DNA from: Aplysia californica
Taxonomy: Eukaryota
Assembly (NCBI RefSeq): GCF_000002075.1
Contig: NW_004797730.1
Span: forward strand, 421,145 to 485,144
Reading direction: 5' to 3'
Length of the DNA: 64,000 nucleotides
Position numbers and translations under genes: made by a program. The notes under the pieces are model-generated. The model searched no databases and was not told where the DNA came from. It saw only the letters and a list, made by a program, of their open reading frames with translations. Position 1 is the first letter of the stretch; every line of letters starts with the position of its first letter. Below are positions 30,201-36,200 of this stretch, piece after piece.

Positions 30201-33200
30201 GTGGCAAGCTGGTTTGACCCTGTCTGCATGTGGTATCCTACTATTTGATCTACTGTTAATGAATTACTCCCCTTTTGACTCTATTTAAATGTGAGGCAGC
30301 TTGGTGAAATCAGGTATTTGTCAAAATAAGGAAATCCGAGAAACCGGCATTTTTCGGCTACTTTGGAAATTTTTTCGAATTTTTGTTTTATGTCCATTCA
30401 AAAACACTTTTATGTGTGCATTTTATCCAAACAATGTTGATTAAAGGCACAACAATTTTAAATTTGCAGTTTCCAAGGACTCTCAGGCTGTGGAAGCCAC
30501 CAAACCTTGGCGGCCATTTACTCGCTAATTTTACCTCTGAAACCAGGCGACCCCACCTCCTTCAATGGCCAATATCTCGACTCCTGTAAAAGATAAATGG
30601 GTATTTTTTTATTGATAGCTAGGCAAATCAACAACCTTTAAGATGATAACAATAACTCCATATGCCCAAAAATTGATGAGTTTCTGATTTCACTGCGTTC
30701 TGACGCAAATGTGAGGCAGCGTGGTGGAATCAGGCTCTCGTCAAAATAATTAAAGTGAAGAAACTTGCCTTTTTCTGCAGGTTTGGGAATTTTTATGAAA
30801 TTTTTGTTTTTTGGCTCAACACCTTTCAAGGCCATTAGAGAACTCATTTCTATATGGATTTTTCTGAAAAGCGTTGATTAAAGGCACAAAAATGTAAATT
30901 TTCAGTTACCACGGGCTCTTAAGCTAAGGAAATAACTAATCTTTGTGGGCCATTTTCTCACTAATTTTACCTCTGAAAACAGGTGACCCCCTCCTCCTTC
31001 TTCCGCAAATATCTCGACTTGTATTCAAGATAAATGGATATTTTTTTCATCCAAATAAAGACAAGTGAATAAGCTTTAAGATGATACCAATAACGCTACA
31101 TGCCCAAAAATTGACGAGAGCCTGATTCCACCGCGCTGCCTCACATTAATAGTTTGGAAGGTGGGTTGCTGTAACCATGTTTGTCAGGGCTAGTATACTC
31201 AGGGCTGAGAAGGATCTGTAACCATGTTTGTCAGGGCCAGTATACTCAGGGCTGAGAAGGATCTGTAACCATGTTTGTCAGGGCAGGGCCAGTATACTCA
31301 GGGCTCAGAAAGATCAGTACCCGTGCAGAAATATGAAGATACTCTACAAAATGGGCTCTGCATGAAGGTATTGAATTCAAATCTTTTGCCAGTAACATTG
31401 AAGGGTCTCAACACAATACCACTGACACTGGTGTTAATTTATGTGACAAATATAGGTTTTATACTTTTGGAAATAAGGAAACTCGTGGTGTTGATTAATT
31501 TTCATTCAGTGAATAAGCTCTGACAGTTTTTATCCTATTTCTTCTTAGTGATAAGTATTGATATGTTTTCAGCTACCTCTGCTACTTTAAATATAAAGCT
31601 GAAAAAGATTTTTGTTATTGGATGGAATGTGACAGCTTAATTTGTCATTAAGTAAATTAAAAACATTAATCATCCTATCTCAAAAATTCCCCCATACTGT
31701 TACTAACTGATTCTAGAGAGGAATATTGTATCGCCAAAAGCTGGTTGTTTTTTGGGGTTGTTTTTTTTTTAGTTTCCTTTGAATTTTTTCTTTCAGAGTC
31801 CTAAAGATCAACACCATACCTCACAGCATTGCCTTCTGCAGTCCTGAGGGAGATCTGCTGGTGGGAATCTCCAACCATTTGTTCCACATATCTCACAAGA
31901 AATGTAAGCAACCCTGAGCACGTGAACGCCTTTATTTTCATTAATATTTGTGGGTGTAGGTTTGTTTTTATACAATGAAGGAAAATTATGTTAGATATTA
32001 AAAGATTCATACTGAATGGAAGGTTTAAAAAATGTACGTTTTGCACTCTTTCTGTACAGAGGGGAATTTACTTGTTCCACTATCATTATATATTATGTGG
32101 ACTTGAAATGCCAGGCTCATCAAGTTCAATGAAGATCTTTAAAATTATTTCTCTATGGGTTTGAAATTTTAGCTGAGAGTGTATGTTGGTTATAAATTGT
32201 TTGCACTCTGTTTTAGATTTTGGTCTACAAGCAACAAATGAAGATAAGCTTTTTTTTCCCTATTTTGGTTCTCACCTGCTCTTCCTGAAGATCACGAGCA
32301 TGTAGCCAATACAAATGTTTTGTTGTTTTATTGTTTTATTCAGATCTGCCACAGTTCTATATCCGGAAGCAGGTCTGCATGAAATTCCCGTCCAAGAAGG
32401 ATGAATCACCTTTGGAGTTTGATGAGAACAGACTTAATGAAATGGACAAAAATGATGTGAAGAGGCTGAAGAACTCACATGCTTCGTTCAAGTCAGTCCC
32501 TCTTTAAAAATTATAGAAATTTAAAAGTTTTCCTATTCTACTTTGTTGTTAAAATACTATTTCCAATGTTCTTTTTCTTCATTGTAATTCAAAGTCAGAT
32601 AGCAATGTTAATAACAAAATTCTCTCCACTTTTACAAGACATTCATAACTTTAGTCCTTATTATAATTCCAAATTGTGCTTGACTGTGACCATTGCCCAA
32701 TGTTTTGAGCTGTTAAGTTAGTAACATAACCACCATGTCACATATGTAGATTTCATGGAAAACTGTAGAATTTTTCAAGTGGGAACCGAGCTTTTTTTTT
32801 CTTTCTTTTTGTTGGTCATTTTTCCTTTTTGATCTCTTGCCATATCTTCAGTTTACATGGTTATCTTTTGCACATATATATATAATATATTCCAGTCTTC
32901 TTTTTCATAATTTATTGTTAGGCTAGTTAAATCATCGCAGCTATATCTTACTTTTGATGTTCTTTTGATTACAGATTTGAGCATTTTGTGGACATCTTGA
33001 GTGCAGAAGAGGAAGAGGAAGTGATGAGGGACAAGAAGATGAAGGAAGAAGTAAGCAAAAGTATTTTTTTGAATTATAGCTCGCCCGATGCAAAGCGCTC
33101 ACTCTTTGTCTCCGGCAAGCTGCTCCCAGCGGCTCGGGCACATTCCTTTACAACGACTTCGACATCAAATCACTTTTCGGAAATTACCGAAAACAGGTCT

Positions 33201-36200
33201 CTTATACTGGAAGTTCATTCATCAGATGAAGAACTATCAAACTAAGTTTGCTAGTTTCGATTTAATGACCCATTTAATGACCCATTTAATGACGTTTTTG
33301 TTCTTTTATATTCAGCACCAAAAAAAGAACCTCGGTGTAGTGGGTTTACCCCCCTCGGAGATAAAGAGTTAAACAGAGCCTAGATTCGAACTAAAGCAAA
33401 CCCTGCTCTAACAAAGAGGTCAAAGATAATACACTGACCTGTGTGTAGAACGGTCTCTCGCTCCGGCCGACACTTGCTTGTGTGCATCTCACCCAGCCGC
33501 ACCAGGGCAGGTTTGCTGTGGGTCAGATCAAACAGTTCACTAAATATACAAGATCAACCAGCCCAAAGCAAATTTTTCTATACATATTGTCATCAGGTAT
33601 GAATTTTAAAAATATACCAAACTATTTTACTCTATGATCTATACATAACACATGTATATTTTCATTCCAACTACAATTTTTCGTGCCCACTTTACAACAC
33701 CAATAGAAAACTTATTAGTCTTCTAATTATTGATCTAAAATCAATACTCATAATATGAGAGTTTTTTTAAAGTTCAAATCACTGCCTAAAAAACTTAGGC
33801 CACAGTTAAATGAGCCTGACTATTAATAACAAATGGGCTTGCAGTTTTATAGATGGGGAAGAAAGGTAGGGAGAAACTTCTCCTTTCTCAAAATATCATT
33901 GAAGAATGAAGTCTAAAAAAGAAAGAAAATGTATGGTAGAAACCAAATACCAGATAGGAGACTCCACATGGTTAAGCTTGATGCATAGATTAACAACAGA
34001 AACATTTTTACTATATATCAACTCACTGAGCAATCTTTGGCAGCACCAGCACTGTATTCTTGGCCTGCACAACTGTCTCTCCCTTCTGTCTTCTCTTTAC
34101 CTCGCCTCTGTGCAGTTGTCGGGTGTGATTTGGGTTTAGTTTTTGTACTATAAGTAGAAATCCCTACAACATAATTAGTGAGGCAGCGCGGTGGAATCAG
34201 GCCAGGCTCTCGTCAAAATAGTCAAAGTGAAGAAACGTGCGTTTTTCCGCAGGTTTGTGAATTTTTATCAAATTTTTGTTTTTTGGCTCAACACCTTTCA
34301 TACCCATTAAAGAACTCATTTCTGTGTGGATTTTTCTGAAAAACGTTGATTAAGCGCACAAAAAAATGTAAATTTCGGTTACCACGGATTCTCAAGCTAA
34401 GGAAATAACTAATCTTTGAAGGCCATTTTCTCACTAATTTTACCTCTGAAAACAGGTGACCCCCACCTACTTCTTTCGCAAATATCTCGATTTGTATTCA
34501 AGATAAATGGATATTTTATTCATCCAAATAAAGACAAGTGAACATGCTTTAAGATGATACCAATAACTCTACATGCCCAAAAATTGACGAGAGCCTGATT
34601 CCACCACGCTGCCTCACATTAGGTCTTTTTGATGATGGCTTTCACACTTTAAGTTGTTGAATTCTTTTTTTTCTTTGACCCAAGGCTCAATGAATAAATT
34701 GACATAAAAGAAGGAAGAGGTGTGAAGTAAGACAAAAAATGAGAGGCAAGGGGCAACGCTGCATGCCCTATTAGTGGGAAAAAAAACATTTTTTTATCGC
34801 TCCTCTGGCTTTGAGAGTAGAAGCTTCACCACATGCTCAACCCGTAACATGTTTCTGACAACTACTCGTATATGTTCATATATTCTTTGTGCCTCTTCAG
34901 TGTTCAAAGTTAGCTCCAACCTCAAGGTACAGACTAAGCATCCTGCTTGCTATCACCCTATCTCTATGTCTTGACATTCCAACGTGCCTTGTTTTAAACA
35001 ATTATGATTTTGTTGTTTGCTGTCTCTGAGTATTACTTGAATATCTTTTTTTTAAAGATATCATATGGCTTAAGCTTTTTTTAAAAATTTATGTCTTATA
35101 ACAGTTTAACTTGTTATCTTTCTTTTCAAATATTTGAAAATTCATCATTTTGTTTGAATGGTATCATTAGGTTCTCAAGATAGATTTGATAATGAGGTAA
35201 AATAGTAGACCTATGTAAGGGGGGGGGGGGGTACAAAAACACATGTCGAGGAAGAAAAAGTAGGATGTCCGAAATAAGCTACAGTAAAGCCATGCACTGT
35301 TCCCAAACTTTTTCATATATTCAAAAACTATTTAAAAAATAACCTCTTTGACAAGAACAGTGGCGGATACAACTGTGAACTTTGTTGAATATGTTGCTCT
35401 GTGTTCCCCAGGCCTTCATGATGTTGGAGAACAGAGAAAGTGAACTGGTTCAGATCAGGGATGGAGCTTTGATCAGCAAACATAAGCCGAAGTCTACCAA
35501 GCGGACCCAGAACAGAGCCTTCAGGGAGTACATGAAAATGTACTACAACAAGGAGAGAGAAAAGGTAGGAAGCCTTGTAGTTTTCTTACTGTCTTGTCTT
35601 TAGATTTATTCATTTATATATACCTGTCTTGTCTTTAGATTTATTCATTTATATATACCTGTCTTGTCTTTAGATTTATTCATTATATATATACCTGTCT
35701 TGTCTTTAGATTCATTCATTATATATATACCTGTCTTGTCTTTAGATTTATTCATTTATATATATACCTGTCTTGTCTTTAGATTTATTCATTATATAAA
35801 TACCTGTCTTGTCTTTAGATTTATTCATTATATATATACCTGTCTTGTCTTTAGATTTATTCATTATATATATACCTGTCTTGTCTTTAGATTTATTCAT
35901 TTATATATACCTGTCTTGTCTTTAGATTTATTCATTATATATATATATGTCTTTGAATAGAGCCATCAGTAAACATATAAAGGACCAAGAAAAAACAGGG
36001 TAGGCTGTGGTCAGCATGTGAGCATTGAAGTATCTCTATATAACAGAATATTGCCATGGCTCTGTTTAAACCTATGGGCACGAGAACAAACCTTTACCTT
36101 TCTAGCATTTGGCCCAAGGGGTCCCAGGTGCTCATCGTCCTGTCAGCTCAGTGGGGCAGGGCTAAACGGTTAAAATTAGTTGGGCATGGGTTGAGGTTCT

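Follow-up and report, generated by a model that had tools for sequence, protein, structure and literature searches.

An antisense duplicate of exons 29-30 within intron 17 of a WDR97-like gene of Aplysia californica, a probable by-product of DNA repair

The window analysed here is a stretch of 64,000 nucleotides from Aplysia californica (contig NW_004797730.1, positions 421,145 to 485,144 of the forward strand, numbered below from its first letter) that contains a WDR97-like gene. Intron 17 of this gene carries, in the antisense direction, a duplicate of about 744 bp of the same gene, reaching from the end of exon 29 to the start of intron 30, and beside it a miniature inverted-repeat transposable element (MITE) of a family that is also present in intron 30. 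We consider it reasonably probable that the duplicate is an old and fixed by-product of DNA repair, likely without a dedicated function. The structure of the repeat, its copy number, the identity of the MITE, the pattern of divergence and the presence of the copy at full depth in several animals are direct observations.

The repeat was delimited in the window through an inverted-repeat search, blastn and MAFFT alignment. The inverted-repeat search linked 33127-34116 to 52480-53403 through a series of inverted pairs, and with all three methods 33098-34116 on the plus strand is the reverse complement of 52480-53419; the original prediction, made from the letters of the sequence, had given exactly these ends. 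In the core of the match (33292-34116 against 53302-52480) 90.1% of the 832 alignment columns are identical and there are 11 gap openings (blastn, E = 0, 1068 bits), well outside what chance would give. The copy starts 50-54 nt past the donor of exon 17, which ends at 33048, in agreement with the predicted distance of about 50 nt, and the source lies 18.4 kb from it, in cis, inside the same gene. That no gap adjoins the copy is also borne out, the only N runs being at 28508-28909 and 48162-48400, with 28910-48161 free of N.

Each arm of the repeat, arm A in intron 17 and arm B in the exon 29-intron 30 region, is made up of two parts. The outer part of about 270 nt is a MITE, here called MITE1, while the adjoining part of about 744 nt (33373-34116 against 52480-53220) is a duplicate of unique DNA that runs from the last 90 nt of exon 29 through all of intron 29 and exon 30 into the start of intron 30. 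This unique part occurs exactly twice in the 927-Mb, 4,332-contig assembly to which the window belongs. The copy had been predicted to hold exon 30 and intron 29 together with the 3'-terminal 90 nt of exon 29 and the splice sites belonging to them, and the coordinate map agrees. The view of the whole repeat as a copy of exons 29-30 is right for the 744 nt, but its outer quarter is a pair of MITE copies that had gone unnoticed; the repeat ends at 33098 and 53419 are the flanks of these MITEs, whose probable part in the origin of the repeat had not been recognised either. The features of the two regions are as follows.

32970-33048, plus strand: exon 17, from tblastn of residues 763-789 of the Haliotis WDR97-like protein P0009; donor GTAAGC at 33049
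33049-35411, plus strand: intron 17, 2,363 nt, from the limits of exons 17 and 18
33098-33372, no strand assigned: MITE1-A, core 33102-33368, flanks CTCA and TTAA, terminal inverted repeat CTCTTTGTCTCCGG, from alignment of genome copies
33373-33438, minus strand: copy of the start of intron 30 (about 64 nt), abutting the MITE end directly, with 6/63 differences
33439-33515, minus strand: antisense copy of exon 30, both splice sites kept, minus-strand tblastn match
33516-34026, minus strand: antisense copy of intron 29, 9.3-9.8% diverged, with small indels only
34027-34116, minus strand: antisense copy of the last 90 nt of exon 29 and its donor, with 4 differences
34117-34177, no strand assigned: 61-nt spacer, occurring once in the genome
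34178-34621, no strand assigned: MITE2, about 445 bp, unrelated to MITE1, with terminal inverted repeats, from blastn within the window
35412-35567, plus strand: exon 18, from tblastn
about 51598-51697, plus strand: exon 28, from tblastn
52377-52569, plus strand: exon 29, 193 nt, donor GTGAGT; duplicated part 52480-52569
52570-53076, plus strand: intron 29, source of the copy
53077-53153, plus strand: exon 30, 77 nt, acceptor CACAG|C, supported by homologues
53154-53220, plus strand: duplicated start of intron 30, about 67 nt, from the coordinate map
53221-53419, no strand assigned: MITE1-B, core 53225-53415, flanks TTAA and TTGA, in the opposite orientation to MITE1-A
from 53978, plus strand: exon 31, from tblastn

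To judge by similarity, the host gene is WDR97 (KIAA1875)-like, as had been proposed. Exon 29 alone (52379-52567, 63 amino acids), queried against a representative protein library, found 26 proteins. The full-length matches, of about 1,500 amino acids, come from Haliotis and Saccoglossus, bear the name 'WD repeat-containing protein 97-like' and have WD40 Pfam hits. With P0009 as the query, tblastn gave 25 collinear plus-strand matches in the window from 3153 to 54210, among them support for exons 17, 18, 28, 29, 30 and 31. Spliced homologues confirm the joins between exons 29, 30 and 31 and fix exon 30 at its 77-nt form. Exons 29 and 30 together thus measure 270 nt (193 + 77) between phase-1 boundaries on both sides, and here too the earlier reading was correct.

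MITE1 is a TTAA-flanked element with terminal inverted repeats CTCTTTATCTCCGG and CCGGAGATAAAGAG, for which at least 1,758 candidate copies turned up in a first-look search of the genome. The outermost bases of the inverted repeat, CTCA at 33098-33101 and TTGA at 53416-53419, are the 4-nt flanks of the two copies. MITE1-A has an internal deletion of its own and a 12-nt tandem duplication, and MITE1-B has other internal deletions. The two MITEs are diverged at 36/190 positions (18.9%) and the adjoining intron at 53/566 (9.4%; Fisher p = 0.0007), the latter within the 8-10% that had been estimated by eye. The difference persists when CpG sites are left out, with 17.2% for the MITE arms and 9.0% for the intron (p = 0.0045). 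When arms A and B were compared with 29 other genomic copies, the identity between A and B was 81.8%, with means of 85.0% for A and 85.6% for B against the others, and over the left half MITE1-B was the poorest match to MITE1-A among all 30. Each of the four large indels in the MITEs (about 45, 58, 51-63 and 12 nt) belongs to one arm alone and none is common to both, while the unique part has indels of 1-5 nt only; derived sites in common number two, both near the junction end. The maximum-likelihood tree of the 31 copies is a star. On the distances, the ranks and the indels, rather than on topology, MITE1-A and MITE1-B look like separate insertions.

In the unique part the exon-derived segments have changed little. 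The arms differ in exon 30 at 1 of 77 positions, synonymously, and in the exon 29 part at 4 of 90, two of the changes being synonymous and two nonsynonymous (R>H and M>K), the same differences that had been read by eye. Perfect runs of 94, 70 and 51 nt are found between the arms, and exon 30 with both its splice sites lies in the longest (33453-33546). In intron 29 alone the patchiness of the differences is not significant (p = 0.15). For polarising the changes the outgroup was a pair of short marine metagenome contigs from a related gastropod (L040 and L041, 84% protein identity); their introns are not alignable and the comparison covers the exon 29 part only. Of the changes in that part, the two nonsynonymous ones arose in the copy and the two synonymous ones in the exon still in use, which indicates that the antisense copy is not under protein constraint. 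At 33859 all three of three independent samples have T, the state of the source arm, where the window has A; this A would be a private allele or an error, making the fixed divergence of the arms slightly lower than the assembly value. The differences between the intron 29 arms (33516-34026 against 52570-53076) are rich in transversions, with 17 transitions to 30 transversions, and the MITE arms have the usual excess of transitions (22:14). The transversions may reflect an AT-rich context or error-prone repair synthesis when the copy arose.

Parts of the stretch are contained in 20 runs from at least six studies. Over 32700-35700 we compared X5 (2022, probably DNA), X7, X13 and X22 (raw poly(A) RNA), using contigs from a k = 31 assembly graph with a 95% filter on matches. 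Apparent variants of the copy, for example at 33563, were not used; they may be contigs of the other arm that pass the filter where the arms are more than 95% alike. Contigs specific to the copy are present in X5, X7 and X13, the three DNA-like runs, and one from X5 (33573-33912) has 2 mismatches to the copy over an interval in which the arms differ at about 30 sites. The depth on the copy compared with the flanking unique intron is 47-73 against 45-53 in X5, 6-8 against 4-6 in X7 and 7.5 against 5-6 in X13, and it is about double (129) on the 94-nt run common to both arms. Full depth on the copy together with doubled depth on the common run excludes a misplaced haplotype at half depth, for which the original prediction had named halved coverage as the sign; all three samples have the copy at full single-copy depth. 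In both X5 and X7 contigs bridge from exon 17 and the left flank into the MITE (32874-33130) and from the MITE end into the copy (33344-33602). X5 has SNPs and indels relative to the window in the flanks and its haplotype is not identical to that of the window. The copy is fixed in several animals.

One further contig of X5 matches 33906-34116 apart from 3 mismatches, but the next 195 nt do not resemble the window. Past the 51-nt identical run the arms differ at exactly three sites (34096, 34104 and 34111), and the likeliest explanation is a path in the k = 31 graph that crosses to the other arm. A contig of X7 (33573-33868) is of a different kind. It is A-type overall and B-type at five clustered sites (33614-33624), and since A-type states bound this patch within 10 and 7 nt it is beyond what a k = 31 graph can create. 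The patch hints at a short gene-conversion tract or at a retained ancestral patch, and is a candidate for a conversion tract segregating in the population. Under either reading the arms or their alleles are mosaics, which offers a neutral explanation for the near-identity of the exon parts.

From these observations we infer a mechanism of repair, followed by neutral decay and some gene conversion. At the outset introns 17 and 30 would each already have carried the same TTAA-flanked MITE in opposite orientations. A double-strand break at the right-hand end of the MITE in intron 17 or just beside it, perhaps the result of an attempted excision, would have produced an end that invaded the homologous MITE of intron 30, 19 kb distant. 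Synthesis would have left the MITE and run on into its flank, first through the beginning of intron 30, then across exon 30 and intron 29 and finally for 90 nt into exon 29, after which the new strand would have come free and been sealed by end joining at 34116/34117. The copy would then have decayed as non-coding intronic DNA to about 9-10% from its source, with occasional gene conversion between the arms keeping some stretches identical. The unique homology starts exactly at the MITE terminus, the histories of the two MITEs appear to be separate, the breakpoint at 34116/34117 (inside exon 29) has neither TTAA nor a target-site duplication, and the source is in cis. Taken together, these features make MITE-primed repair the simplest account. 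The distance of 18-19 kb also fits the cis bias of gap-filling captures by terminal inverted repeat (TIR) transposons, 57% of which, in animals, are found no more than 15 kb from the parent (Tan et al, 2021, PMC8277862).

Several points weigh against such an origin or against the neutrality of its product. No outgroup displays an intron 17 that is empty or has the MITE alone, the outgroup contigs reaching the exon 29 part only. The approximately unbiased (AU) test leaves MITE1-A and MITE1-B unrejected as sisters (p = 0.40), and the left flanks CTCA and TCAA could be one shared, mutated TTAA. The right junction at 34116/34117 is bridged by none of the independent contigs listed for X5, X7 and X13, and the same is true of the MITE interior. 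The exon-derived 167 nt of the copy have 2-3 changes where 7.8 would be expected from half of the intron divergence (Poisson p = 0.016-0.048), and selection for pairing would also explain so low a number. Finally, that the copy has no dedicated function, which we regard as most likely, is argued from geometry and not from a tissue that expresses the gene.

The result of the AU test and the similarity of the left flanks would suit a copying of the whole block of about 1 kb, MITE and flank together, in one step by template switching or another non-homologous route, the MITE taking no part in priming and its arms having diverged faster. The two derived sites shared by the MITEs point the same way, and the DNA synthesis that repairs a break can introduce errors close to it (Wicker et al, 2016, PMC5023962). 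We think this unlikely. The MITE arms are twice as diverged as the DNA beside them, also with CpG sites excluded, they are not each other's nearest copies, and the large indels private to one arm have no counterpart in the unique part with its 1-5-nt indels. A breakpoint chosen at random would, moreover, have had to fall by coincidence exactly on the MITE terminus.

A second alternative is that the copy has been kept for what its RNA can do. The self-complementarity of the pre-mRNA is a property that can be read from the sequence, and the claim that it exists is upheld: RNAduplex gives -1369 kcal/mol and 844 bp for the full arms and -1136 kcal/mol for the unique part, compared with -207 to -239 kcal/mol for ten shuffles of the unique arm of about 740 nt. 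The perfect 94-bp stretch covers exon 30 and both splice sites, a region for which the duplex has -271 kcal/mol against -44 when it is folded alone. A used duplex between intron 17 and exons 29-30 could mask exon 30 and the donor of exon 29 and so give an in-frame skip of 90 amino acids, or it could promote back-splicing, serve as a substrate for ADAR, or yield small RNAs from the hairpin that tune the gene. It could draw on the stability of the pairing, on the perfect runs of 94, 70 and 51 bp, on the low divergence of the exon-derived parts and on the fixation of the copy in several animals. Circularisation needs inverted repeats of no more than 30-40 nt (Liang & Wilusz, 2014, PMC4201285), and long-range pairings can control splicing (PMC8052449, PMC7797038).

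The geometry, on the other hand, argues against a duplex in cis. Intron 17 is short, lies 18.4 kb upstream of its partner and ends 17 kb before the partner arm begins. Ordinary co-transcriptional splicing would be expected to take intron 17 out before the partner arm has been transcribed. A duplex of about 1 kb would be possible only in transcripts that keep intron 17 until exons 29-30 have been made, and thus needs delayed splicing. In X22, a single raw poly(A) RNA run, exon 17 and the unique part of the copy have zero reads on either strand and exon 18 has about one, which makes the gene silent, or nearly so, in this run. One arm is not confined to an intron, unlike in known pairs that promote circular RNA (circRNA). 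The low exon divergence is explained equally well by constraint on the source together with gene conversion, at which the X7 allele hints directly, and intron 29 is not significantly patchy. The inverted-repeat search of the window also found other inverted pairs of transposable elements inside the WDR97-like gene, so self-complementarity is not special to this spot. We give a used duplex a slim chance; of the original prediction, the structural part stands and the functional part is unsupported. A more specific form of the idea, to which we give a chance slimmer still, would make the copy a built-in complementary sequence for exons 29-30. In this form slow splicing of intron 17 would let the duplex hide exon 30 and the exon 29 donor, or feed ADAR or Dicer, the gene would in this way control which C-terminal isoform it makes, or its dosage, and the exon parts of the arms would be held close to identity by conversion or selection.

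An error of assembly, whether a misplaced divergent haplotype or a repeat-induced misjoin into intron 17, is the least credible of the alternatives. The unique part of the copy is indeed an island between two high-copy MITEs, none of the independent contigs listed crosses the interior of MITE1 or the right junction, and the X5 contig departs from the window for 195 nt past 34116. But arms that differ by 9-10% with indels and have different MITE copies are not alleles. Copy-specific contigs reach full depth in three samples, with twice that depth on the stretch common to both arms, and X5 and X7 have the left-hand bridges. The region from 28910 to 48161 has no N, and the 3 mismatches of the odd contig equal the number of A/B differences past the 51-nt run and fit a graph switch. 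It is, besides, very improbable that a misplaced segment would have landed by chance in its own parent gene.

The MITE-primed repair duplicate that we prefer is of a kind already known, a transposon-associated repair duplication creating an intragenic inverted repeat, with an origin that is unusually legible. It resembles single-copy Pack-TIRs and fillers of the breaks left by transposon excision, the latter described in rice (Wicker et al, 2016, PMC5023962; PMC8277862), in being a single-copy capture of exon plus intron beside a TIR element, with its source in cis within about 20 kb, its product in an intron, and break repair rather than transposition as the route. As for Pack-TIRs, there is a parental copy, the product is single-copy (two genome copies in all) and the distance is 18.4 kb. 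Unlike in Pack-TIRs, the captured DNA lies outside one intact element end and not between the halves of an element: MITE1 is complete and is found on one side only, the far side consisting of 61 nt of unique DNA and then the unrelated MITE2. The template, too, differs, being the flank of a second MITE copy with hundreds of bases of homology instead of 1-36 bp of microhomology. Transposition of a composite element was considered and rejected. Such an element would be marked by a duplicated TTAA at its two ends and by an inverted terminal repeat at the far one. There is no TTAA at 34116/34117, and a TIR-like 12-mer in exon 29 (10/12 match) is direct rather than inverted and lies about 12 nt inside the breakpoint.

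The comparison with systems in which RNA pairing has a role is less close. Back-splicing repeats (PMC4201285, PMC12093144) are likewise reverse-complementary stretches in one pre-mRNA, those described here being far longer. Both arms of a circRNA pair lie in flanking introns, whereas here arm A is in intron 17 and arm B runs from the 3' part of exon 29 across intron 29 and exon 30 into intron 30, with a loop of 18 kb and 11 exons. The complementary sequences of ADAR editing sites and the pairings in ATE1 (PMC8052449, PMC7797038) share with our case an intronic stretch complementary to a distant exon of the same transcript. They are short, conserved across species and functionally tested, whereas this is a recent 1-kb duplicate with an arm in an upstream intron that is expected to be spliced out first. 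As in the hairpin RNA loci of Drosophila (PMC10292708, PMC10317233), an inverted partial gene copy can form long double-stranded RNA with its parent; those loci are separate transcription units with close arms and documented small interfering RNAs, whereas the arms here are 18 kb apart inside the parent gene.

Catalogues of transposon gap filling in animals consist mostly of inserts that lie within the element. The copy in intron 17 would provide a clean molluscan example of break repair in which another copy of one MITE served as the priming site and host exons were duplicated, and the homology used for priming, the start precisely at the MITE end and the far breakpoint closed by end joining are all legible in the sequence. 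An inverted repeat of 1 kb inside a gene is a standing liability for inversion and gene conversion and a possible source of double-stranded RNA. Were skipping, editing or small RNAs to arise from the arms in a tissue that expresses the gene, this would be a rare instance of exons copied in antisense regulating the gene they came from.

The gene holds further self-complementary sequence. A second intragenic inverted pair, 86-94% complementary, is formed by 43458-43777 and 48563-49215, one arm being made of tandem units of about 67 nt. Its arms lie in introns flanking three exons at 45537-48555, a more classical circRNA-type geometry than that of the repeat in introns 17 and 29-30. Just past the exon at 50220-50351, a near-perfect hairpin with 49-bp arms (50405-50522; -71.7 kcal/mol, z = -11.4) consists of two inverted copies of an element of about 76 nt, which has at least 882 candidate copies in the genome. 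The identity among these copies, 96-99%, suggests that the element is a very young foldback or the end of a MITE. MITE2, beyond the spacer that borders the copy, is of very high copy number, with depths of 10^5-10^6 in the contigs. A 34-nt piece of its terminal repeat (34573-34606) is matched by more than 300 reads of X22 that have the same non-window flanks on both sides, so that some abundant mRNA from elsewhere in the genome carries a fragment of MITE2.

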